Notes: generated by a model from the sequence alone, not told the origin. Positions 18,448 to 32,652 are shown, counted from the first letter of the stretch. The stretch is 64,000 nucleotides of DNA from Mytilus edulis (GCF_963676685.1 NC_092346.1:63054001-63118000), one strand, 5' to 3'. Made by a program: numbers and translations.

Positions 18448-18649
18448 TGATATTGAAGCAGGGGAGACAATTTTCTAAATTCAAGCCAAGAAAAATGTAA
18501 TCTATAACTTACTTTGGATTTATTTTTTTTGAGGATTAGGAACATTTGCATTTTTGTTGATATTGGTTTTGGAAGTCAGCATATAAGCCTAAAGGAATGT
18601 TATCTTTGTAGAACATTTAAATTCATGTTTACCCGTATGAGAATTTTAG

Positions 18650-19017
18650 AGGGATTCCGCTTAAAATTAGCAGGAACCCAGGCGGAATCCGCTTAAAAAT
18701 CTAGACTTTTAGACGGAATTAAGGCGGACATGGAAAAAAGAAAAAAATCCGTCTAAACTGTTATATACCTTAGGCGAAATGTTAACTTTTTTCCTGCTGA
18801 GTTAACAGGATTTCTGTAGCAACAGATATAACACAGACGGAATGCTGGACTTAGTAAGATTTGTTTCATTTCTAAGGTGGAAATTGTACTTAAAAAATTT
18901 TTGTTCAATTTTATGAGGCGGAATTTGTACTTAGAAAATTTTGTTTATATTTCTGAGGCGGAATTTGTACTTAGAAAATTTTGTTTGAATTTCTGAGGCG
19001 GAATTTCGGACTTAGAA
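18650..19017. repeat. Left subterminal motif array of the EnSpm element, including five ~40-bp units each carrying an AGGCGGAAT-like core
   Basis: GAGGCGGAATTT at 18915, 18955 and 18995 (40-bp period), with degenerate units at ~18834 and ~18874. Outer copies occur in both orientations, e.g. AGGCGGAATCCGCTT. Confidence 0.9.
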
Positions 19018-19759
19018 TATTTTTCACTTTTTTCTTATGAAAAATATATTGATTTATTTGTATTTTTGCAAATATATGATTAGAGGGTGGTGATTATCTG
19101 AGCAATATATCCAACATTAGTCAAGTTATCCAACAGATCAGAGATGCACAATCCCAGTATGTGGTTTGTATCAGTGCAACTTAGAATCATTTGCAGGCTT
19201 TAACATCACATTACCATCATCATGACCCATATATCATACTTAGGCTTTAAAACAGAAATCTGTTGAATAAAATTTATTTGGAGACAAATCGATGTATCCT
19301 TATACAAATATGAACTACAGAATAAAACAACATTCATGACATGTAACAACTACTAGTTTTATTCTCTTGATTTTCAGAAATCTACATTCACAGTACATGC
19401 AGTACCACAGTTTGGATTAATTTTTCATCAACATGATTAATACAAATAATATTTTTTCCCTTTACATCAACATGATCAACATGATCAATATTTTCTAATT
19501 TTAGTTTTGTAGCTATCATAATTTGCATTAAGCACTGTGAAGAAAATATTAGTTTTATGCTTTCTCTTTACACATGCAGGGCATATCCAGCCATTTTTAA
19601 AAAGGAGGTTCCCAACCCAGAGTAAAGGGGCAGGAACTATATGCTCCCATTCAAATGCATTGATTGGCAAAAAAAGAACTTTTACTTTACTGTTTTTAGA
19701 AAAAGGTTACATATGTACATGTATATAAACATTAATGAAATACTTAGAAATATGAAATA

Positions 19760-22700
19760 TTAATCTGATTCCATTTTGTTTGGGAATTTGCAAATATATG
19801 AATACTGTGCACAATCATATGTAACTAGCATACAAGAAGTAGTTATGTTTTCAATTGGTATTACTTCCAAAAATGCAGTTTTTGAAACTCTTAGAATATT
19901 GGACTTTGGTGCATAATTTCCACATCTTAGTTTTTCAATAAAAGCCAAATAGTACTGTTGATCATTCTCTACAAGATTAATGAAAAACTTGACTTGTCCA
20001 AAATTAATTAATCCCCTACATTTGTATTCAATTACTGAGTTGTTCCTCTTTACCATACGAGTATATGACTTTCCATATACAATACAGTCCTTCAGTTCCA
20101 AACGTTTAAAGCATTGAAACTTCATTTGTATAAGCTCATATCCAAAAAAATTATGCAATGCCACATTTTCTGAAGCAGATAGAGTTATTTCTTTTATGCC
20201 ACCTAAAATATAGCCAATGTTTCCAATTTTTTTCATTCGCTTTAAAATGTATGGACATTCCATTGAGTTATAAATTGATTCACAAACTGATCCTTTTTCT
20301 ATGCAGTTCTGTTTTAACTCTGGCAACTTTTGAAGAAAAGATACTCCAGTTACTATTTGGCTATCAATATTCTGAGTACCACGAATCATTCTAATTAAGG
20401 CACCATTTTTGTCTTCAAAAGAGAAACAACTGTGAGTATATAAAGGACCTAAATTGCGAACACAATCAGCTAAATGTAACAATTGGTGAATATTTAAGCG
20501 CATGTAACATCCATTGTAAAGTCTTGGAAAATTCTTACAAAATTCCAACAAATACATTTCTGCTTCATTTACTTCTTCATCTGTTGATCCATATTTAAGA
20601 AGAACATGCATTGCATTTACCAACAATAAATAATGTGACCATCGTTCCTGATCAAGTATTCCATGTAGAACTGGAGCACCATAATATAACAGAAAAGATC
20701 GGTACTCTGAAGCCTTCCAGTATTTAAGGTCATTCTGTATTGTTCTAGGAAGTCGTGTAATTTCAGTAGTTGGACGTATACTAATAAGTCTTTCATCAAC
20801 CTGACACAATTTTTGGAAGAAGTTGAAAGGTTTAGAAGAATGTTTTTGAGCAAACCATAATTCTAATAAAAGTTTCTGTACTCCCAAAAGTACCCCATGC
20901 ATATAGTCAATGGCAATACCATTGACAATGTCAAATTCTGGGAAAAAAGACAACCATGATGGACCTTTAATTCCTTTTACTACAGAACTTGTTCCATGTG
21001 TACCATTCAATGCTTGACGAGCATTTTCAATAACATTGTGAACTGTTCTTTCTGGGCCTTTTGGATTTGCCTCATCAAATGGAAATACTCGCGTCTGACC
21101 TTTTCCAACTGCTGCAGAAGTGCCTTGTTGTTCACATTTCCAACAGGAGTATGCACCATTATATTGTATATGGTTGCATAATATACTTCTTGCTGGAAGA
21201 TCTGCTGTACCACATAACAATATTCCTTTTGATAGAAATGCTCCTCTTTTTGGAGAGAAGCATTCTATGCCATTATACAAATTTTTCATTGAATGTTGAA
21301 ATGGTTTGAGAAAAGTGCCCATTGCTGGTTTCTGACTTCCAAACCATAAGCTTGCCAGTATCATATTCTCTCTTTTCATTCGTAGTTTATACGGCAGTTC
21401 ATTTATTACCAAGAAAATAGGCCACACTGAAACTTTACTGCTCTTAAATACTGCTGCTCCATCAGTGTTAAAAGTAAAAGAAATGTTATCAGGATTGCTC
21501 AAAAGACCATTCTCTTTGTTTAAAGATTTATAAATTTTCCCGTCATAAATATCTTCGTAGGTTCCATCTGGTGTATTACGCATAAAGCGATGTTGCAATC
21601 TTTCATAGAAATTTTCCTGAGAAAACAAATTTTGTATTTGGTTCTGTAATGGTATTTCAAGAAAGTAATTTCCATCATTTTTACTAAATGGCTTTTTACA
21701 AAATTCATATGGACAATTCTTTAGAGAAGTATTTTCAATGGCTCCTAAACAATGGCCACAGTAGAAGTGTTTTACTAATGGAATACGCAAATTTGTAAAA
21801 AACTTTTTAAACTCATGGAGCTTCGTACACAGATTATGTTCAAATGGTAAAGCAAATGCAATAATGTTCAATAACACTTGTGTTCCTTCGCTAGACACAC
21901 CAAAATTTGTTGTAAATAGGGCAAGAAGTAGCATGAAAGCTCCTACTGTTACTGAAGCTCCAGGATAAAGTGGTCGTAAGTCATAGTCTGAATTCAAATC
22001 ATCATTCTGATCAAAATTAGTAAATGTATGTTCATCATCATTGGAATCTTCCCAGAGCTCGAAAGGATCTTCTAACTCTATTGTTTCTTCATAAAGGGAT
22101 TTAAGAATATCGTCCAGTTCTGGATCATCACTTTTTAAATCTATTTCTGTAGCTTGTTCAAAGGTAATTGCATCAACTTGGTCACAATGATCAATAGTAC
22201 TCTGCAGCTGAAATAAGCAAATACATAAAAATGTACATTTGTTGAGTAATGCACATGTATAAACATATCTTTAAGGTTTACATGCAAGTTATTTACATTT
22301 ATGTATGTGCCTGTCCCATTAGTCAGGAGTCTGTAATTCAGTGGTTGTCTTTTGTTTATGTGTTACATGTTTGTTTTTCATTCATTTTTTTACATAAATA
22401 AGGCCGTTAGTTTTCTCGTTTAAATTGTTTTACATTGTTTTATCAGGGCCTTTTATAGCCGACTATGCGGTATGGGCTTTGCTCATTGTTGAAGTCCGTA
22501 CGGTTACCTATAGTTGTTAATGTTTGAGTCATTTTGGTCTTTTTTGGATAGTTGTCTCATTGGCAATCATACCAATCTTCTTTTTATGTTACATTGTACA
22601 TTTGTATTAAGCAGTAATACATGTATCTAAAATTTATACACTGTGCAGGTTTAAAAAAGAATTGACACAGCAGGTTTTTTCTTAAACAGACCATAATTTT

Positions 22701-23304
22701 TTACATGTACAAATGTACAGATTATTATGAGATAGTTGTTTTGATTATGAGCTGCAATTTAGTAAAATGCTAAATCACGTTGATGTATTGGCCTCAGATG
22801 ACAACATGATGTAGCGATTACATGATCAATTGAAGGTCATCTATGTGTGATACTCATTCACGTGTTAATCTTTAAATAATCGTGTTTAAAGTTGCAAAAC
22901 TTACTTTTTTGTGTTTTTGTTTATTTGCGGAAGTTGAATATTTTTAAAACAATAACGGAGATGTTCCGGAATGCGGAAATATGTTCCGGATAAAAAAAAA
23001 TACCAACACTATAATATATAACATGCGACGTATAACCTACCATTGAGGCTTCTGGAGCAGGACTTTCTTTGGATAACAAATTGTTTTGAATTTCATCCTC
23101 AAACACGAAGCTTTGGTTAACTTCCGACTCAAAAATGTAGTTTTCGTGTAACTGTTCAGTTGATTCATTCGATGTTAAATCCAAAGTAGGGACAGAACCA
23201 TTAAGAGTCAACACTGGAATCGGAAGTCCATCCTTTTTTATTATTTCTTTTTGTCTGTATGGTCCCCTTTTTCTTTTCTTTTTCATATTGTATTCATCGG
23301 CCAT
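19760..23304 (-). CDS. CMC/EnSpm (CACTA, Tnp2/Transposase_21-like) DDE transposase, 2 exons, ~903 aa, uninterrupted
   Basis: Exon 1 is 23304-23041 (MADEYNMKKKRKRGPY..., NLS-like; donor ATG|GTAGGT). Exon 2 is 22207-19760 (acceptor TTTCAG, in frame with the 745-aa track ORF). Motifs: FYCGHC..CPYEFC, YEDIYDG, FTFNTDGAAVFKSS-SVWPI, CGTADLPARS, YNGAYSCWKC, IDYMHGVLLG, YWKASEYRSFLLY, NIHQLLHL-GPLYTHSCFSFEDKNG, RNNSVI. Confidence 0.93.
22300..22586. repeat. Abundant SINE-like/retroposon repeat inside the transposase intron
   Basis: Shares GCCTGTCCC..GTCAGGA, ACCTATAGTTGTT and AGTTGTCTCATTGGCAATCATACC..ATCTTC with other copies in the window: ~11272-11397 and ~13135-13237 (reverse), ~26985-27080, ~33355-33645, ~39865-40105. 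Confidence 0.8.
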
Positions 23305-23898
23305 GTTGAGGAGAAGAGTACTGTGTACAATTGGGGTTGCCAAAGGATGAATTAATTGCTTGTATTTGGAACCATTTTATTTGCTGCTATGTAGTCCTTT
23401 GAATAACTGTATATTTTTGTATACCAACTTTTCCAAGATCGACATATTTAAAGCCAATATTTTGTTCAGAATGGTGTTTTTTTTTTAATTATAAAAAATA
23501 TATTTTGTCATCAGTAAATCAAATTCATTAGACAAATCCGCTCCACAGATTATATTTTATGAAGAAAAATCAAAACTTATAAAAAAATACATGTTCTCAA
23601 AGTCAGGGTTTTTTATTTTTAGCCTTCTTAGGTCTTTAATTTAATATTCATATTAAAGTAAGTATATAACGTTTTTTTTTAAATAAAAATCTGTGATACA
23701 CTGCATGAGTTGAACCTGTGACGATCCTCATTCCGTTATATCAGTAGCATACGCCAGAGCTTACTGTAATTTGAAACCTCAATGACCAGTGCCATGCTGA
23801 ATAGCGTTTCCTGTAATTTGAAACCTGAAAGACCAGTGCCATTTTGAATTTTCATCGCCACACATCATCACAGAACACGTTTTTCGAAGTAAAAAAAT
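23305..23898. promoter_or_regulatory. Probable bidirectional promoter region of the transposase/BEN gene pair
   Basis: 594 bp separate the two divergent ATGs. The interval contains a 32-bp direct repeat (23764-23795 and 23811-23842, 30/32 identical). Confidence 0.55.
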
Positions 23899-26800
23899 AT
23901 GTATGCCTGTATTCATTGCGATTTTGACAATACATTGACTGTTCTTGGAAAGCAAAGCAAAAAGTTGAAGTTATTGGGAGAATTCAAAGTTAAAGAAAAG
24001 GTTGAACTGAAATGGTCAAAATCGGAAATCTACACAGGAATAATTGTAAAAATCAACGGTAAGTTACTTGCAATTTTTAACATTGAAGGAATTTTAATAT
24101 CTATTCAGCAGTTTTGTTTTAAGAGTTAATATTATTTTTTAAATTGTTTATGTTTTTAAAGGTACGATTTATTGTTTTTTTTTACGACTTAAATGTAATT
24201 TAAACAGTCACTTAATATTGACTACTATAAAACATGTGGTTATAGTAGTCTCAGTTAATATCAAGGATTTGGTGATAGTAAAACAATTATTCGTCTCGGG
24301 TAAAAAGGAAACAACCTTTGAGACGTGTTGTACAATTATTTTAAAGTATTTAAAAAGACGTAAGTTCTAAACTTTCTGAAAAAATCGTTGAACTACCACC
24401 CCCCTTTTAATCGGAAAATGTATCCTGATCGCGATCGATGTAGCCTCCCATAAGTTTACTAGACTTTATAATTTGTAATCAGTTCTGATATTTAACTTTC
24501 CTCGAAATCTGGACCATCCCTGCCAAATAAAAATATTTTATTAAACCTATGCATGTCATCGTGAGTATTTACCCCATGCTTTATGTTCACGTAAATATTT
24601 GTCGATAGATGTCGCTGCTTCGACGTAAACAATATCGTAAATACATGGTTCCCTGTACGAGTCATCGACTATAACGCCTTATATTTAACAGATATGCTAT
24701 TATTCTATAACAGTTTAAAATTTTCATTCATAAAAATCCCAACCGACAAGACGAAAACAAATTGAGATGGCATGCATTTAATCGAGCTAAGGGTTACAGG
24801 GAATTAAAACCTGATGCTTCTTAAAAAATCCAATTAAACGGTAATCAATTATAGTCATGATTTTTCGGATATTTTCTTTTTACATGAATATTATGACTTA
24901 AAGGAACCGATCACAAGATTTATGTCAAACTACTTTTCTCGGATTTTTTTACAGGGATGAGATGATTTTTTCAACTTTCTGATTTTTTTAACTTAAGATT
25001 TGACTAAATATTCAAGATGTTGATGTTTGTACTGCCACTAGTCCAATTGATAATCTGGTCTTCAGTGACTATTATTGTACATGTATATTAAAGTTATTTT
25101 GCTTTGACGCCTTACTGATCATGAGCAGACTTAGGCTTATAGAAAAATAATTAAATAGCCTTGCAGCACGTCAATAATATTTAGACTAATGCTTGCACAT
25201 GCTTGTCTTTCTTTAGTGGCGGATCCTGATGTTTTCATAAAAGAGGAGGGGATCACTGACGGTATCGGGATCGTTCGCCCTGATTACATATTTGCCCTAG
25301 GTTCGTTCACACTGAGTTTGTTCGTCCTGATAGTCCGTTCGCCCTGGGTTCGTTCGCCCTATATTAATTTATGATATGTATATGTTACATCAATGAACGA
25401 AATATATATATATGTATATATTAAAATTTATGTATATCTATTAAAAGTTAAATACAGAATATTTGCCAAATTTATATTAATAAAATAAAATTCTTGGCTG
25501 CATTGCTACACTTTATTTTATAATTACTTTTAATAACTGTTGATTGAATTTTGATTGCTGATTAGGTGTCATTTTGAAACCTGAGTTATCACTGATTGTT
25601 AGATAAATTGTCTTTGATGGATTAATATTGAGAATACAGTAACAAATACTTTGTAGTCATTGAATTCACAAAAACTTATCCTTGTATAGTCTTTAGTTGT
25701 TTTACATTTTCTTCTTGCTCAACAGTTGGACTCATCATGGCCAAAAATGATGAGTCCCTGGACTTGCCACCAAAAATCCTTAGCGAGAACCATGTTAATG
25801 TCGTCAGAACAGTAAAGTGAATTTGCAATTTGAGTTAGAATTTACATTCGGACTTAAAATATTTCGAATGCGATTTACACTATTTGGGTAATGCAAATTG
25901 AATTCAAATTATGTGTGAACGTTGCATGAAACATGTATTCTCACACTTTGATCTTTTAATTAAAATTCTTCACGCATGTACACATCTATGCTGCTCAGTA
26001 ATGAAATCAATTGTTATTTTTTGTAGAATCTCAAGACTTTTTGGATGAATTCGCTATAAAAGCCGTAACAAAGTTTTTGAAGCGTTCAAAGAGTAAAGAC
26101 TTGCCAGAGGAAATATACACATACAATCATACGGAACCAGAATTGAATTCAAAACGATGCAGGACAAGCACCAAAAAAATAAATGAAAGTAAGGAACAAG
26201 AGAGTCAATTTAGCCCCAAAAAGCAGAAAAAACATAAAGATGATGATGAACCTAACCAAGAGCCACCCATTGCAGTTACCAAAAAATCAAAAAAAAATCT
26301 GAAGCAAAATGAAAATGTCAAAGTCACAGATAAAGTATTAAATCCTACAAAGATTAAAGCTAATAAGAAAAAGGCAGAGGAGAATGTTTCTAAATCTCAG
26401 GGCAACCAGATGTTTGGCTTATCAAATTTGGAACTCCAGTTTGGTGATGAGAGTTCCATACATGACGAGACAGTCCTGTCAACATCTGAAGAAAGAAATA
26501 ACTTGGAGATATTGCCCTCTAAACCAGCAAGTTCTGCAGACCCTAACTTGACAGCTCCATCTCCAGACAGGAGCAACATATTGCCATCCTCTCCTTCGAT
26601 ACTTGCAGAAAGGAGCCATGCACCCTCCACATCTACACCATCTGCAGACAGGAGCAATACATTGCCATTAACCGCTTCGCTAGACGATTATACAAACCAA
26701 AGTGCAGGACCTATGCCATCTGCATATGCAGGAAGCACCTTGAAAGGGCCATTGCAGTCAACATCAGCAGAAACATCTTTGACAAGTACATGGAAGTTGT

Positions 26801-29800
26801 GTAAATCACTGTATAATGTGGATAATTCAGAGCAAACATGCTCTAATACAACATTAACAGAAATGAATTTTCCAGGTAATTTATTTACATGTATTATCAC
26901 ACTTAAAGTAAAGGCTTAAAAAGAGTACATGTAGTGTACACTGTGAAGAAGTTGATCTTTGAAAAAAATGAAAAAAAAGTTGTACCTGTACGGTGACCTA
27001 TAGTTGTTGATTTTTTGTTTCATTTTGGTCTTTGGTGGATAGTTGTCTCATTGGCAATCATACCACATCATCTTTCTTATATATATGTAGTTAAAAAAAC
27101 AAGGCCAGTTAACCTATCTACCCTACTTTATATTCTATCCTGAAAGATATTTTTTTGTCATTTTTCATTAAGCATTGTAAAAGTCAGAATGCGATCAAAG
27201 CCTTGGTCAGCTTGAATTGGAGTTGGAATTTATTTACCTCAATTACTTAGGGTGACAATGTACTGGTATATACTTACTACAGTGAACTACATGTAGAATG
27301 TTAAAAACCTCAAGCACATTTGTTATGTATGAAGCAGAAATAAACTCAAATGGAATTATCTTTTTCTGACCAGTTTTGATATACATGTACATTGTACTTC
27401 AAATTCATCTGTAAATGAACATTTGTTAAGATTAACATATTTCATTGCAATACTTGATGTACACATTTTTTGTATATGGCTATTGATAAAAAATACAATT
27501 TCATACGATAACTACGTCCCCTTAACTTAACTTAGTTTGACTTTAGTATATATGTCATACATGTATCTGTTAACTTTGAAATAACTGTATAATTTCAGTG
27601 CCATCCCCAGTTGTTCTGGAATTTCTTGAGTTGATAACAAACAAAGAAGTGCAAAACTTTTGCTTAAAACTTAGTCAGCATTACAAGTTTAAGAAACAAG
27701 AGGAAGTAATTACAGAAAGCAGTACAGATAAGGAGGTATGTTTTTGTATACATGTTTCTCTAAGAAATTGAATTACATTTTTTATGAATTAACAAGTCAT
27801 ATTCAACAATTGAAATACTGAAAAGTTGATATATTATTGTATAATTGGGAATAACATCACAGATTTTAATTTGATATATATGTCCAGAAATCTATTTATA
27901 GTCATGACAGTAAAATATTGTAGGTTTGAAATCAAAATTTTCCTTTTTATAAGCACAATATAAAAAAGAAAACAATTTTTATGAAATCTATGTTACAAAA
28001 CTAAAAATAATTCCAGAGATCTTAATTGTGAAAAACATCCTGTATTCACTTCTAAATACTTTTAGTATAAATAATAATAAATCCTTAAATGTCTAAAAAC
28101 TAATTTCTGGTGACAAAACTTGAAAAAAGTTTCGTAGGAAGATATAAACTGTTTCACGAAAAAGACTTTTATTAATAACATGAATATACATTGTACTTGT
28201 TTTTGGCTCTTATTTTCAGTACACTTAAAATTCAGAATTCATTAGAAAAAGGACAGATACATGTATCATCCAAGTATGTCAGTCTATAATAATGTTATTT
28301 CTCATTGCTTTCCCTATTTTTAAACTATTAACTTATTATTATTATTATTTTTTAGTTTCCTTTAGATGTCATGGAATCTTTGGACTGTGCTCCTACATAC
28401 AGTGAGCTCATGCCTCAGAAAAATCAAAGCCTTGGATTGAGGAGATCACCTAGAAAACATGTGTCTAGCTCTGCTTCCTTCACTGGTAATAGCACTTGTC
28501 AACCCTACTACCAAACCAGTGAAGAATGTACTAGTACATGTACTCAAAAACCAACTGAGAAATTTTCTGCAACTAAAGACTTAAATCAGTACCAAGAAGC
28601 ACCCATCCAACAGATTCAGATGTCACCTTTTCCCTGTCCGTCTCCTCTGAATTCTCAACATCAATCTCCTAACATTCAGAGTTCAACATTTTCCAGCCAA
28701 CATTTTCCGTCTCCTCTGAATTCTCAACATCAACCTCCTAACATTCAGAGTTCAACATTTTCCAGCCAACATTTTCCGTCTCCTCTGAATTCTCATCATC
28801 AACCTCCTAACATTCAGAGTTTAACATTTTCCAGTCAACAGAGTCCGTCTCCTCTGAATTCTCAACATCAACCTCCTAACATTCAGAGTTCAACATTTTC
28901 CAGTCACCAGAGTCCGTCTTATCTGAATTCTCAACATCAACCTCCTAACATTCAGGGTTCAACATTTTCCAGTCACCAGAGTCCGTCTCCTCTGAATTCT
29001 CAACATCAACCTCCTAACATTCAGAGTTCAACATTTTCCAGTCACCAGAGTCCGTCTCCTCTGAATTCTCAACATCAACCTCCTAACATTCAGAGTTCAA
29101 CATTTTCCAGTCACCAGAGTCCGTCTCCTCTGAATTCTCCATCGCAACATGTTATGCAGTCACATGATAGTGATCAATCTGATGACAATAAGGTAAAAAT
29201 TATTATATTTTCAAGAGTAAAAAAATGCCTGAGTTTTCAAGTTAATTATGCTTCTAACAATTATGAAGAATTTTATGTCTTAGATTGTTAGTGTTATTTT
29301 TAGATATAAGAAGGATGCAAAATTAATAAACACTGGGTTTCTCATGGATTGTATAATGTGTTTAGGGACTATAACATCATAATTGGTTCACGAGTAAAAT
29401 GTTTCTTTTTAGTGTTAAAGGGTAAACAATCCTCATTTCATGTATTCCGCCAGATAATATACTGTAAATTCAGAAATTATTGCGTGCATTTATTATTGCG
29501 ATTTTGTCATTTTACACTTGAATGCGATTTTAATTTTTACGATTTTGAGAAAAGTCATGCTTAAGTCAGTTCAAATATTACAAAATGCGAGTTTTAATTA
29601 TTGCGTTTACAACTCAGTCGCATTATTCGCAATAATAAAAACCTCGCAATAATTTCTGAATTTACAGTACATGATTTTAAGGAAGATATCTTTTTGACAT
29701 AAATTTAAGAGCATCTCTAACACTCAAACACGTACATGTTCACAAGCTAATATACATACATCATAAAAATGCAAACAAAGCAACTTAATGAATGTACTTA

Positions 29801-30867
29801 TATTTTTCAACAGTTGGATATAAGAATATTTTGTCTGACAGAACCTTGACATTAGACACCAGCCGTTTATCTTAAAAGGAAAAAGGGGGGAGGAAGTTTA
29901 AAAGTAATTCAGCATAGACTCTAATTTTTATTAATTTTATAACCGGATGATAAATACATCTTTTTTATTTTTCCAGATGGTTAAGTTACTGCAGACATCA
30001 GATGTACAAGTGAGGCGGGGTAGTTTAAGAAAGGCCAATACCAATGCAAGTAAAGGTGCAACTCAAAAATCATCTTTTAAGCTGGCTAGTTCATTGCTGC
30101 CCCTGTTATTCTCTGTTGATGAACTTGCAAATTCATGTGGACAAGGTTTAAAGAAGAAAGCCAATGATGTCAGAACTCCTTTGGATCCTGTTAGAATTGG
30201 AGTCTTAAAAGGTAAGGTTTTGTATTTCTTTATATTTTGATTATTTAATATATATATGCACACCTAAAAAGCCCATAGTATAAATGTAATGGGTAGGATC
30301 TTAATCTGGTACAGGTTTATAATCAATGTGAACTATTTTCAGATCAATAGCTAAGCCAAAAGCCAAGATTTTCTTTAATTTAACAATTCCATATATAAAG
30401 CATTGACTGAGTGAAATTCTTGAACTTAAATGTAACATATGTTAATAGTTTAAAAAGTGAAATTGACTTGTTGTTACTGTATTTTTAGTAAAACATGGAG
30501 TCAAAATCAGCTCTAAAGATAGGGAATTCAAGTCAATAATATGTCAAAATAATAAAGAAAAATACCAAATATTTATTGATAATATTTACATTTGACCAAA
30601 TTAAATCAACCAATAAAGGGATGCTCAGGAAAAAATATCTGACCTACTTATGCAGCTCACAATTTACCTGTATAACATAGACGAATTTGGTAAATTTATT
30701 TTAATTTAATCCATTATGCATGGTAATTTTAATTTATGTCTTCTTTTTTTTCAGATTATGTTACTGCTTGGTGTGCAAAACACAACAGATGCATGCAAGA
30801 TTGCCAGATCAATGATGCCGTTACAGAGCAAGTCAGCTATGCCCGAAAAAAAATAAAAAAATTGTGA
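23899..30867 (+). CDS. Transposon accessory protein with C-terminal BEN domain, 6 exons, ~776 aa
   Basis: Exons 23899-24058, 26027-26875, 27599-27735, 28356-29192, 29977-30211 and 30755-30867 join in phase (2331 nt) with GT-AG sites and no stops. The C-terminus FKLASSLLPLLFSVDELANSCGQG...RTPLDPVRIGVLKDYVTAWC...QINDAVTEQVSYARKK matches the BEN pattern (LL..LFS.EEL.NS...G, PLDP.R, terminal helix with ARK). The middle is K-rich and S/P/Q-rich low-complexity sequence. Confidence 0.85.
28638..29138 (+). repeat. Coding tandem repeat, 69 bp x ~7.3 (23-aa unit PSPLNSQHQPPNIQSSTFSSHQS), in exon 4 of the BEN gene
   Basis: Units start at CCGTCT 28638 and the eighth begins at 29121 (7 x 69). The copies are nearly identical and in frame. 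Confidence 0.97.
29462..29667. mobile_element. MITE (Tc1/mariner-type, TA TSD) in BEN gene intron 4
   Basis: Perfect 23-bp TIR CTGTAAATTCAGAAATTATTGCG / CGCAATAATTTCTGAATTTACAG flanked by TA on both sides; internal TTATTGCG repeats. Confidence 0.9.
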
Positions 30868-31118
30868 ACTTTCTTTATATCTGAAGAACACTGGAAAAAC
30901 ATAAAAATGTGACTTATAAATGAATAGGAAGAAATTGTGAAGGACTAAGATTGTCAATATTTTACATATGTACATTGTAGTAAATTATAGTTCAAATACA
31001 GTTGGCCAGGTTTGATAACATTTTTGGTATTTAATTTGTATGAGCCCTAGATATTCTTTGCAAGAATGCATAGAAATGGTAAAAACCTCAATCTGTAGAA
31101 AGAAAAATTTCTTTCTTT

Positions 31119-31480
31119 GAAGGCAGATTTTTTCCCCCTTTTCTTAAGGCTGATTTTTTTTCATATTCTAAGGCGGAATTTATTTCTAATTCTTTAGGCG
31201 GAATTTTTGCCACTTTGAAAGGCGGATATATTTTCCGTCTATTTAGGCGGACATATTTTCCCTCTCTTTAGGCGGATATATTTTTGTGAAATATTTTTCC
31301 TTTTAATAAGGCGGAATTTTTTCCCCCCTAAGACAGGCGGATAAATTAGCATATTTCGGCTCTATTCCGCCTGGAACCCGCCTGGAATCCATGTAAGAAA
31401 GATTCTTCGTGTAAAGGGTGACTTTAAAGGGATTCCCTCTAAAAAACCCGTCTAAAACCCGTCTAAAATACGCCTGGATT
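31119..31480. repeat. Right subterminal motif array of the EnSpm element
   Basis: Many AGGCGGA(A/T/C) copies on + (31170-31342), then inverted copies (TTCCGCCT, CCCGCCT, CCCGTCT twice, TACGCCT) toward the terminus. Confidence 0.9.
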
Positions 31481-31877
31481 TTTTCGTACAGGCACCTTAT
31501 ATACCCATGCAATCCTATGATATCCTTCGGATAATAATTATTCCAGAGTAGTTGAATTTGGATTGAAATAGCTATTAGCTACTACAAGTACTCCTTAGAC
31601 AATACTCCATTTAAAGTTAAAAAGAGGCATAACACTAGATAGGTAAATGACTTACTGCCACCCATATTAAATTTTTGCCTGTGTTTTGTGGTTCTTAGCA
31701 TTGTATATGAGTTTTATTAAATTTGCATGAGGCTGACTAAAGCTTAAGTGTGGAAGCAAATCATTTGCAATTTTCCAAGTTATAAAGGGCATAACTCTAG
31801 AACTGTAAGCCATTAATGATCAAGTTCCAACTCAGTCAGTGTGTTGTAGAAATGTAAGAGTGACAATTTTCTTTTAG

Positions 31878-32652
31878 TTTTTAACCGGATTTTTGTGACA
31901 AAAATGTCGGTTATTGATTTGGGGATGTACGGCGGACGGCTGGGCTGTCGGGTGGGCGGCAATCAAATGTTGTCCGTGCATTAACTCATGAACCGTTCAA
32001 CCAAAGCTTTTAAAATTTTAATATGTTGTTACTGACAACTAAATGAAGGTCAAGTTCAATAATGGCGATTTTGACTTTTACCGTTCAGGAGTTATGGTTC
32101 TTGAAAGATTGAAAAATGGAAGTTTCTAGTCGTGTCCGTGCATTTACGCATGAACTGTTATACCAAAGCTTCCCAAATTTCAATATGTTGTTACTAATGA
32201 CAAAATGGAGGTCATGTTCAATAATGACGATTTTTGACTTTTACCGTTCAGGAGTTATGGTTCTTGAAAGATTGAAAAATGGTGTTTCCAGTCGTGTCCG
32301 TGCATTTTCTCATGAACCATTCAACCAAAGCTTTTGAAATTTTTATATGTTGTTACTGATGACAAATAGAGGTCAAGTTCAATAATGACGATTTTGACTT
32401 TTACCGTTCAGGTGTTATGGTTCTTGAAAGATTGTAAAATGGCGTTTCCATTCACGTTGTTGCATTTACTCAGAACCATTTAATCTAAGCTTTTCAAATT
32501 TTAATATGTTGATACTGATGACAAAATGGAGGTCAAATTTGATATTGACGATTTTCACTTTCACCATTCATCAGTAATGGTTCTTGTGATATTGCCAGGA
32601 CACAAATAAATATTAATAAATCCGGTTTGCTGTCGTTGTGACAGCCTCTTGT
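31878..32652 (+). mobile_element. Non-autonomous Helentron-type element with ~4 x 161-bp array
   Basis: Subterminal inverted repeat AACCGGATTT / AAATCCGGTT, a GGCG/GACG microsatellite, repeats anchored at CCGTGCA 31974, 32136 and 32298, and a 3' hairpin GCTGTC-GTTGT-GACAGC followed by CTCTTGTT in a T-run. Confidence 0.85.

Follow-up and report, generated by a model that had tools for sequence, protein, structure and literature searches.

A Mytilus edulis transposon of the CACTA-Mirage-Chapaev group that pairs a Tnp2-type transposase with a divergently transcribed BEN-domain gene

Results

Two divergent genes between shared termini

The 64-kb stretch of Mytilus edulis DNA analysed here (hereafter the window) holds at positions 18632-31492 a DNA transposon of 12,861 bp, as delimited by DNA searches of the species' own genome. 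The features of the element are, in window coordinates:

18632-31492: whole transposon, 12,861 bp, delimited by shared copy ends and by an identical copy with different flanks
18632-18643, plus strand: left terminal inverted repeat, CCCGTATGAGAA, the first bases common to 16 copies and also present in the C8 paralogue
18644-19014: left subterminal array of AGGCGGA/AGACGGA motifs, with three 40-bp tandem units at 18895-19014
19760-22207, minus strand: transposase main exon, 814 aa and stop, with Pfam Transposase_21 and the invariant alignment columns
23038-23304, minus strand: first exon of the transposase, coding for 89 aa from the ATG at 23304, with a GT donor behind the Met89 codon
23305-23898: spacer of 594 bp between the two divergent start codons (ATGs at 23304 and 23899)
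23899-24058, plus strand: BEN gene exon 1, 53 aa and 1 nt, a small beta-rich N-terminal domain, 100% identical to residues 1-53 of P0183
26027-26875, plus strand: BEN gene exon 2, mostly disordered, lysine-rich
27599-27735, plus strand: BEN gene exon 3, a conserved two-helix motif (family alignment A1), with RNA joints on both sides
28356-29192, plus strand: BEN gene exon 4, with an RRSPRK motif
29977-30211, plus strand: BEN gene exon 5, coding for the first two thirds of the BEN domain (family HMM E=5.5e-38, positions 56-142)
30755-30867, plus strand: BEN gene exon 6, last BEN helix and stop codon (family HMM E=8.9e-12, positions 137-172)
31120-31480: right subterminal array, with 25-bp tandem units at 31220-31294
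31481-31492, minus strand: right terminal inverted repeat, CCTGTACGAAAA as read on that strand, the last bases common to 16 copies

In about 20 other genomic copies, similarity begins exactly at position 18632 and stops at 31492. A second full copy, C3:62837945-62850805, lies 235 kb from the window copy and matches it with 0 mismatches over 12,861 bp, while the flanks of the two are unrelated. Some 15-20 shorter, non-autonomous relatives retain the element ends only, except that those of 3.2 kb also keep the region of BEN exon 6. Target site duplications (TSDs) of 2 bp flank 10 of 16 copies; that of the window copy is imperfect (TA on the left, CA on the right), and a search for an empty site using the flanks of this copy returned only unrelated repeats, further out. 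The element, a cut-and-paste DNA transposon of M. edulis, looks autonomous and has been mobile very recently; judging from the two identical 12.9-kb copies, it looks currently active. A preliminary description of the locus had proposed a complete two-gene transposon with precisely these limits; the ends shared by some 20 copies and the finding of both genes inside identical termini at two unrelated loci, in copies that match 100%, bear this out.

The two termini match at 9 of 12 positions and thus form imperfect 12-bp inverted ends. All 16 copies start with CCCGTA (or CCCATA) and finish with TACAGG, and the right terminus recurs both in the C8 paralogue and in the metagenome family L050. Inverted subterminal stretches are also found at 18644-18665/31423-31444 and 18707-18727/31448-31468. 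The AGGCGGA motif is confined to the subterminal regions: all 13 of its matches in the window fall at 18680-19002 or 31171-31372, against 0.82 expected, a count reached in none of 100 shuffles. The right array comprises seven direct AGGCGGA motifs, with inverted copies closer to the element end. Among 14 non-autonomous copies, motif positions of the left end are 91% conserved, compared with 77% for the spacers, while at the right end motif conservation (0.83) is barely higher than background (0.81). The array of the C8 paralogue carries the variant AGGCGTA instead of AGGCGGA.

The transposase gene

On the minus strand, a 745-aa ORF (19760-21997) sits within an open frame of 836 aa, and a 5' exon starts at the ATG at 23304. 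GT-AG splicing yields a protein of 903 aa whose structure equals that of M. galloprovincialis VDI80811.1; the M. edulis RefSeq model, of 910 aa, has one additional micro-exon of 7 aa. The main exon is 97% identical to M. coruscus P0001. Transposase_21 (Tnp2) scores 59.1 bits with the window ORF and 58.8 bits with the RefSeq model P0161, above the Pfam cut-off of 28.6; the Tnp2-type transposase of 903 aa announced by the preliminary description stands. All residues of the D-D-C(2)C-H(3)H-E signature are present in the window ORF, and D337, D424, E686, C443-x2-C446 and H662-x3-H666 are invariant in 12 relatives (alignment A4). The N-terminal part contains a zinc finger, C238/C241/C253/C258 (C-x2-C-x11-C-x4-C), which is likewise invariant across relatives. 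This CCCC finger could itself read subterminal repeats.

Structure and transcription of the BEN gene

The 594-bp spacer that separates the start codons is presumed to act as a bidirectional promoter. On its other side, the plus-strand gene comprises six exons that are in frame, with GT-AG at every junction, and that amount to 776 codons, the same structure and length as M. galloprovincialis VDI80809.1. RNA contigs, which carry two species labels, join exons 2-3 (26875 to 27599), 3-4 (27735 to 28356) and 5-6. This divergent six-exon gene had been deduced beforehand, and the three joints confirmed by RNA agree with it. Conversely, the acceptor of exon 2 is read through unspliced in RNA contigs, which agrees with the 595-aa RefSeq isoform whose initiating Met lies at 26410. 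RNA contigs were compared over 24950-30949, an interval that begins within intron 1; they do not show exons 1 and 2 joined, and the full 776-aa form is supported by homology and gene models only. The 3' UTR extends to at least 30949. A further exon at about 25724-25809, whose frame agrees with that of exon 1, was considered and rejected: with 86 nt it would disrupt the frame of exon 2, and none of the public gene models includes it.

Whole-protein tests used two public models that share this exon structure: P0181, the RefSeq protein of M. edulis with 595 aa, which spans exons 2-6, and P0183, the 776-aa protein of M. galloprovincialis. In a tblastn comparison of P0181 with the window, exons 2, 3 and 6 were 100% identical and exons 4-5 were 97.5% identical, in alignments that overrun the splice sites. 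The N-terminus encoded by exon 1 has homologues in Pinctada (P0149), in Saccostrea (P0153) and in the C8 and C11 copies; its match to Pfam Tudor_2 is weak and far under threshold (E=0.04, 14 versus 31 bits). The two-helix motif of exon 3 has a pLDDT of 85-89 in the AlphaFold model. Seven tandem repeats of 69 bp (23 aa) occupy the exon 4 region (28567-29217), and exon 5 is 95% identical to M. coruscus P0121.

The product of the plus-strand gene ends in a BEN domain

The C-terminus of the protein is a BEN domain, closest to that of NACC1. A profile of 20 family members matches the NACC1 BEN domain (7bv9/8yzs) over positions 52-172 with E=1.1e-10. In the AlphaFold2 model of P0181, most 10-residue blocks of residues 476-594 have a pLDDT above 90; the 13 best Foldseek matches of this model in the PDB are all BEN domains, with a TM to target of 0.69-0.78 for DNA-bound NACC1, Insv and Bsg25A. 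Foldseek likewise finds BEN with the Pinctada homologue. The fold assigned in the preliminary description is hence the one recovered by profile (E=1e-10 to NACC1) and by structural matches, which are exclusively to BEN-DNA structures. In Pfam, BEN (PF10523) is the only family matched by the protein, at scores under the 23.2-bit gathering cut-off for P0181 (18.2 bits) and P0183 (18.7 bits); the relatives from M. coruscus (P0122) and Saccostrea (P0153) reach 23.6 and 23.1 bits. Searched singly, the trimmed peptides of exons 5 and 6 matched nothing in Pfam, and the read-through ORF gave E=0.057.

The NACC1/NACC2 BEN domains (PDB 8YZS, 7BV9) provide both the best profile match, over about 120 residues, and the best fold match (TM 0.69-0.75), and NACC1 shares with the mussel domain an S-x-G-x-G loop motif. 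NACC1 differs in being a host BTB-BEN transcription factor, and its identity to the mussel domain is merely about 19-24%.

Conservation of the pairing

An element of 15,972 bp on another chromosome (C8) has the same terminal inverted repeat, a TSD of AA/AA and a transposase 59% identical to that of the window; in its BEN gene, the same intron splits the BEN domain. The BEN domains of the two elements are 35-48% identical, while their array motifs differ. Consecutive accession numbers place the two genes side by side on one contig in M. coruscus (CAC5363251, transposase; CAC5363252, BEN) and in M. galloprovincialis (VDI80809-80812). In six metagenome contig families, with transposases 41-60% identical, the BEN exon pair lies upstream on the opposite strand. 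In the metagenome family L048/L050/L053, copies diverge within a repeat rich in GGGCTC that precedes the transposase, and the left end is not reached by any contig. Other Tnp2 lineages adjoin canonical Pfam BEN ORFs, with four co-locations within 20 kb in this genome versus about 0.06 expected. In the C5/C10 Tnp2 lineage (39% identity), neither the family HMM nor Pfam detected BEN and no long ORF for it was seen, so that not every Tnp2 element has such a partner. The E6 profile matched only 11 places in the M. edulis genome, most of them decayed on C11, not beside a transposase match.

The BEN gene is thus a stable component of a transposon clade and not the cargo of one copy, and transposon and BEN gene very probably belong together. 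The earlier assignment of the gene to the element instead of the host is borne out by its position within both identical copies and within the 59%-identical paralogue, by its place next to the transposase in the annotations of two further Mytilus species, and by its upstream, divergent placement in the six metagenome families.

Discussion

Relationship to known transposons

The element fits the CACTA-Mirage-Chapaev (CMC) group: the transposase has the D-D-C(2)C-H-H-E motif layout, Transposase_21 scores above cut-off, and the TSD falls within 2-5 bp. It had initially been described as of EnSpm/CACTA type, which holds for its Tnp2/Transposase_21 transposase, its CMC motifs and its subterminal arrays of short motifs, but not for its termini, its TSD or its gene layout. 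Since its ends read CCCGTA and its TSD is 2 bp, it is not a strict CACTA element; neither CACTA...TAGTG (or CA..TG) termini, nor a 3-bp TSD, nor a TnpA-type protein encoded by the same unit was found.

The resemblance to maize En/Spm (TnpD + TnpA) comprises a Tnp2/Transposase_21 DDE transposase accompanied by a second element-encoded protein, motif arrays in two orientations within a few hundred bp of the ends, and non-autonomous derivatives reduced to the ends. However, maize En/Spm has CACTA termini and a 3-bp TSD and makes its proteins by alternative splicing of one transcript, whereas the mussel element, whose host is an animal, has two divergent transcription units, and its BEN protein is without detectable similarity to TnpA. 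Mirage, Chapaev and the animal 'EnSpm' library entries display the same D-D-C(2)C-H(3-4)H-E layout. The TSD of Mirage is 2 bp, as here; the match to DUF1258, the nearest Pfam proxy for Mirage, is weak (21.9-22.4 bits, under a cut-off of 33.1). PIF/Harbinger is also a two-gene cut-and-paste system, in which a DDE transposase is accompanied by a separate sequence-specific DNA-binding protein, a Myb/SANT-like protein believed or known to deliver the transposase to the element ends; unlike the mussel element, it has a transposase of an unrelated superfamily, a Myb and not a BEN fold, and a 3-bp TSD. In a full-text search of the literature, no paper was found that links BEN domains to CACTA/EnSpm or to any eukaryotic DNA transposon, nor one that describes a BEN partner for Mirage, Chapaev or the animal 'EnSpm' entries.

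A proposed role for the BEN protein

The favoured overall explanation, to which I give a probability of roughly 0.55, is that of a CMC transposon whose BEN protein is an accessory DNA-binding factor for the element ends. The protein would recognize the CpG-containing motif AGGCGGA(A/T), of 7-8 bp, present about 8 times in the left end and 12 times in the right; by multimerizing, it would draw the two ends to each other and attract the transposase, or set its position, for cutting at the termini. Acting as the element's own accessory factor, it would parallel TnpA of En/Spm or the Myb-like protein of PIF/Harbinger, and it may additionally repress the shared 594-bp promoter. Short, specific DNA motifs are bound by the BEN domains of Insv, Bsg25A, BANP, BEND3 and NACC1, as PDB titles and Dai et al. 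2013 (cited in PMC5704228) indicate. By analogy, binding of the mussel protein to the subterminal arrays is a little short of an even bet. The core motif reported for NACC1, CATG/CATA (bioRxiv 10.1101/2025.10.14.682353), is unlike AGGCGGA.

A rather doubtful alternative is that the BEN protein is an element-encoded regulator and not an end-binding cofactor, the repeats being read by the transposase zinc finger. Its task might be to repress transcription from the shared promoter or set its timing, to protect the element against silencing by the host, or to direct insertions to certain chromatin. Such a function would be in line with that of cellular BEN proteins, most of which act as repressors of transcription or as insulator factors (Insv, BANP, BEND3, Elba; PDB titles and PMC3510454), and the invariant C-x2-C-x11-C-x4-C motif gives the transposase a candidate DNA reader of its own. 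The faint Tudor-like signal at the N-terminus would suit chromatin reading, but lies far under threshold. The arrays hold a short CpG motif of the size typical for BEN reading, and this motif differs between two paralogous elements whose BEN domains are only 35-48% identical; these points speak against the alternative, though not decisively.

It is highly improbable that a single transposon lineage picked up the BEN gene from its host as passive cargo, devoid of any role in the element's life cycle. Cargo genes are indeed found in CMC and related transposons, TET/JBP of fungal elements being an example (PMC12730594), and the middle of the protein is disordered, repeat-rich and fast-evolving (exon 4 is 59-69% identical to M. 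coruscus, versus 97% for the transposase). Yet both in this genome and in metagenome contigs the gene has stayed intact, with unchanged orientation and BEN-domain intron, beside transposases only 41-60% identical, unrelated Tnp2 lineages pair with BEN ORFs too, and the gene is transcribed and spliced. As for an ordinary host gene merely lying between transposon-like ends, which is how gene finders were predicted to treat it and how public annotations do present it (an ordinary protein-coding gene, 'uncharacterized protein' or 'BEN domain-containing protein'), this reading can practically be dismissed, given that the gene lies inside identical termini in both 100% identical copies, whose locations are unrelated, that its last exon belongs to sequence kept in non-autonomous copies, and that the C8 paralogue has the same layout.

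Implications

Few DNA transposons are two-component systems; the examples are En/Spm, which has TnpA, and PIF/Harbinger, which has a Myb-like protein. They have taught how transpososomes are assembled by accessory DNA-binding proteins and how such proteins turn into host transcription factors later. BEN now appears as a third DNA-binding fold, stably paired with a Tnp2-type transposase in bivalves as well as in metagenome contigs. The transposon-BEN pairing also bears on the origin of animal BEN-domain factors. A wider proposal, though unlikely, is that an entire animal CMC clade, in bivalves and probably cnidarians, needs a BEN protein of its own for recognition of the ends and that cellular NACC-type factors descend from such proteins, in the way that THAP, CGGBP1 and Myb-like (NAIF1) factors derive from other transposons. 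Under this proposal the mussel element, with its two 100% identical copies, would also be the first CMC transposon from an animal that is probably active and could serve in an assay. The non-autonomous copies are natural substrates, and the paralogues with AGGCGTA and AGGCGGA arrays suit a specificity-swap comparison.

Boundaries, mobility and classification of the element

The 12,861-bp element is a bounded and recently mobile transposon with motif arrays near its two ends and, between them, a transposase of the CACTA-Mirage-Chapaev (CMC) group and a transcribed gene for a BEN-domain protein. In the assembly that holds the window (1.37 Gb, 14 chromosomes), whole-genome DNA searches with each end recovered about 20 further genomic copies, in which similarity runs from window position 18632 to 31492, exactly the limits assigned in the preliminary description. 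A second full-length copy, located 235 kb away at C3:62837945-62850805 (loci L001/L002), shows no mismatch over 12,861 bp, has unrelated flanks and is framed by a perfect CA/CA duplication. Its left flank contains a TECPR-like ORF with tectonin-repeat-like sequence. The two bases on either side of the element are identical in 10 of the 16 copies in the table of copy ends, against a chance expectation of 1/16 per copy; the target site duplication (TSD) is therefore 2 bp long. The window copy is itself the same as the other C3 copy and its duplication is imperfect, with TA on the left (18630-18631) and CA on the right (31493-31494); a search with its flanks yielded no paralogous empty site. The element ends in short, imperfect inverted repeats (CCCGTATGAGAA versus CCTGTACGAAAA, 9 of 12 positions matching). 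About 480 bp beyond the right end, window 31971-32442 is occupied by a tandem repeat of three units with a period of about 162 bp.

The 15 shorter relatives that were retrieved measure 2.1-6.1 kb, mostly 3.2 kb, and share with the long element only 18632-18985 and 30642-31492, at 75-84% identity; they are non-autonomous derivatives. They keep the last exon and the 3' UTR of the plus-strand gene.

The observation reported in the preliminary description held in every detail, and its structural reading stood as far as a two-gene transposon is concerned, whereas the CACTA label proved too narrow: the element has neither the CACTA termini nor the 3-bp TSD that help to define EnSpm/CACTA in the strict sense, and its second protein is unrelated to EnSpm TnpA. 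The features of the element agree with those of the wider CMC group. Mirage has a 2-bp TSD, which that of the window element recalls.

The transposase

The minus-strand gene consists of two parts.

19760-21997, minus strand: transposase main ORF, 745 aa, inside an 836-aa open frame
23038-23304, minus strand: transposase 5' exon, with a GT donor and an AG acceptor to the main exon

The spliced product of 903 aa matches M. galloprovincialis VDI80811.1 in structure, while the RefSeq model includes an extra 7-aa micro-exon, giving 910 aa (M. edulis database records for the transposase of this locus, XP_071161034/XP_071165965). The 745-aa ORF matches Pfam Transposase_21 at 59 bits (cut-off 28.6), and its DUF1258 score falls under the cut-off of that family. 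Annotated relatives with 45-68% identity occur in Saccostrea, Ostrea, Mercenaria, Pinctada, Argopecten, Dreissena and the coral Montipora. Across 12 aligned relatives, whose identity goes as low as 36%, residues D337, D424, C443-x2-C446, H662-x3-H666 and E686 are invariant, an arrangement that is the layout described for the CMC group (PMC12730594). Residues C238, C241, C253 and C258 are invariant in the same alignment and likely form a zinc finger.

Exon structure and transcription of the BEN gene

Reading of the sequence gives the plus-strand gene six GT-AG exons and 2,328 coding bases (776 codons).

23899-24058, plus strand: BEN gene exon 1
26027-26875, plus strand: BEN gene exon 2
27599-27735, plus strand: BEN gene exon 3
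28356-29192, plus strand: BEN gene exon 4
29977-30211, plus strand: BEN gene exon 5
30755-30867, plus strand: BEN gene exon 6

Transcription was followed with contigs from runs that are probably RNA, their word share being close to the exon fraction, mapped over window 24950-30949. These contigs join 26875 to 27599, 27735 to 28356 and 30211 to 30755, with zero depth in the corresponding introns; they support the exon 4-5 junction by implication only. The exon-2 acceptor is crossed unspliced, in agreement with the M. edulis RefSeq model P0181 (595 aa), whose start methionine lies at 26410. The 776-aa form is that of M. galloprovincialis VDI80809.1 (P0183), whose exons 1 and 2 are 100% identical to the window; conservation of exon 1 extends to the N-termini of the Pinctada (P0149) and Saccostrea (P0153) homologues and to the copies on contigs C8 and C11. 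Since the exon-2 acceptor is read through as in P0181 while exon 1 is conserved in P0183 and the homologues, the existence of two isoforms, of 776 and 595 aa, is plausible.

Exon 4 contains seven 69-bp tandem units (window 28567-29217) that encode 23-aa Ser/Pro/Gln-rich repeats. The M. coruscus homologue P0121 has a different number of repeats, with a different sequence, and the corresponding region of Saccostrea P0153 contains repeats that are unrelated to these; such variation points to a fast-evolving disordered linker. Very high-copy short repeats lie in introns of both element genes (26950-27149, 29350-29749 and 22523-22574), where RNA-contig depth reaches thousands to tens of thousands; window 27014-27065 repeats 22523-22574 at 92%, and 29440-29689 is a MITE-like inverted repeat.

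Identity of the BEN domain

All whole-protein tests were performed on the public models P0181 or P0183. The Pfam BEN model gave nothing or a marginal score on single exons, and 18.2-18.7 bits, under the cut-off of 23.2, on these whole models. An exhaustive search collected 36 exon-5 relatives, from M. coruscus, M. californianus, Saccostrea, Magallana, Pinctada and Nematostella, and a profile built from 20 of them matches the solved BEN domain of NACC1 over 120 positions (E=1.1e-10). Window exons 5 and 6 match consecutive stretches of the family profile (E=5.5e-38 and 8.9e-12, respectively). High confidence in the AlphaFold2 model of P0181 is limited to the exon-3 helices and residues 476-594. 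When this model was compared with the PDB using Foldseek, the top 13 matches were all BEN domains, several of them in DNA complexes, with a TM to target of 0.69-0.78 for NACC1, Insv and Bsg25A; the C-terminal BEN fold on which the preliminary description depended is thus present. The Pinctada homologue gave the same BEN outcome.

Association of the BEN gene with the transposase

The BEN gene is present in both identical C3 copies, and a decayed copy at C11:9.18 Mb (88-94%) retains exon 1, exon 2 and the transposase. The paralogous element at C8:4853323-4869294 (15,972 bp, TSD AA) shares its termini (CCCGTACGAA and CCTGTACGAA) with the window element and carries a transposase 58-61% identical to that of the latter, as well as a divergent gene with exon 1-, 2-, 5- and 6-like parts, in which an intron interrupts the BEN domain at the same point. 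In M. coruscus the accession numbers of the transposase and the BEN protein follow one another on a single contig of 497 kb, and in M. galloprovincialis VDI80809-80812 do so on a single contig of 271 kb. In six families from JGI/ENA metagenome contigs (L108, L057, L045-47, L044, L118 and L050), an exon-5/exon-6 pair lies 3-6 kb upstream of a transposase 41-60% identical to that of the window, on the opposite strand, and the terminus of the window element recurs in one of the six, which ends in ...TTTTCGTACGGG.

Distant Tnp2 lineages of the same genome also adjoin divergent, canonical single-exon BEN ORFs (C7:12.47 Mb, C6:82.15 Mb and contig C1929); judging from hit counts, four Tnp2-BEN co-locations within 20 kb compare with about 0.06 expected. 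The copies at C7:12.47 Mb and C11:28.48 Mb (L027-L029, C7:12471676-12493155; L025/L026, C11:28483300-28490623) belong to one family of about 7.3 kb and 35-41% identity, with termini starting CCCC (CCCCTGTGAGA and CCCCGGCGAGA), CATGAA-rich subterminal repeats and a BEN ORF, scoring 32 bits with Pfam, divergent from the transposase. A 14-kb insertion separates the two genes in the C7 copy. No BEN was detected in the C5/C10 Tnp2 lineage (39% identity) with the family HMM, Pfam or a long-ORF search. Contig C11, of chromosome scale, is strikingly richer in decayed fragments of Tnp2 and BEN than the other 13 chromosomes.

In the full-text literature, as distinct from repeat-library reports, where prior curation is possible, no account of a BEN accessory gene in a eukaryotic transposon was found.

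Subterminal arrays and the possible role of the BEN protein

All 13 exact occurrences of AGGCGGA in the 64-kb window fall within 18680-19002 and 31171-31372, whereas 0.82 were expected and none of 100 shuffles reached 13. With the one-base variants AGACGGA and AGGCGAA included, the left end has about 9 sites and the right end about 12, mostly direct, the inverted ones being closest to the right terminus. Among 14 non-autonomous copies, motif positions are 91% conserved versus 77% elsewhere at the left end, and only 83% versus 81% at the right end; as the copies share ancestry, the support from motif conservation is weak.

A plausible hypothesis is that the BEN protein binds the subterminal arrays and helps to assemble or regulate the transpososome, a role that would parallel those of En/Spm TnpA and of the Myb-like protein of PIF/Harbinger. 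In its working the element would resemble a CACTA element with two components. BEN domains of known structure recognise short, specific DNA motifs. In favour of array binding, the arrays at both ends contain such a motif, and two paralogues with divergent BEN domains use distinct variants of it, mostly AGGCGTA in the C8 paralogue versus AGGCGGA in the window element. The likely zinc finger of the transposase itself counts against it, and the main rival explanation is that the BEN protein is an element-encoded regulator or chromatin factor. That the gene is passive cargo is unlikely because it is conserved alongside transposases that have diverged to 41-60% identity. The C8 element (L020-L022) and the window element form a natural pair for the co-variation of protein and site.
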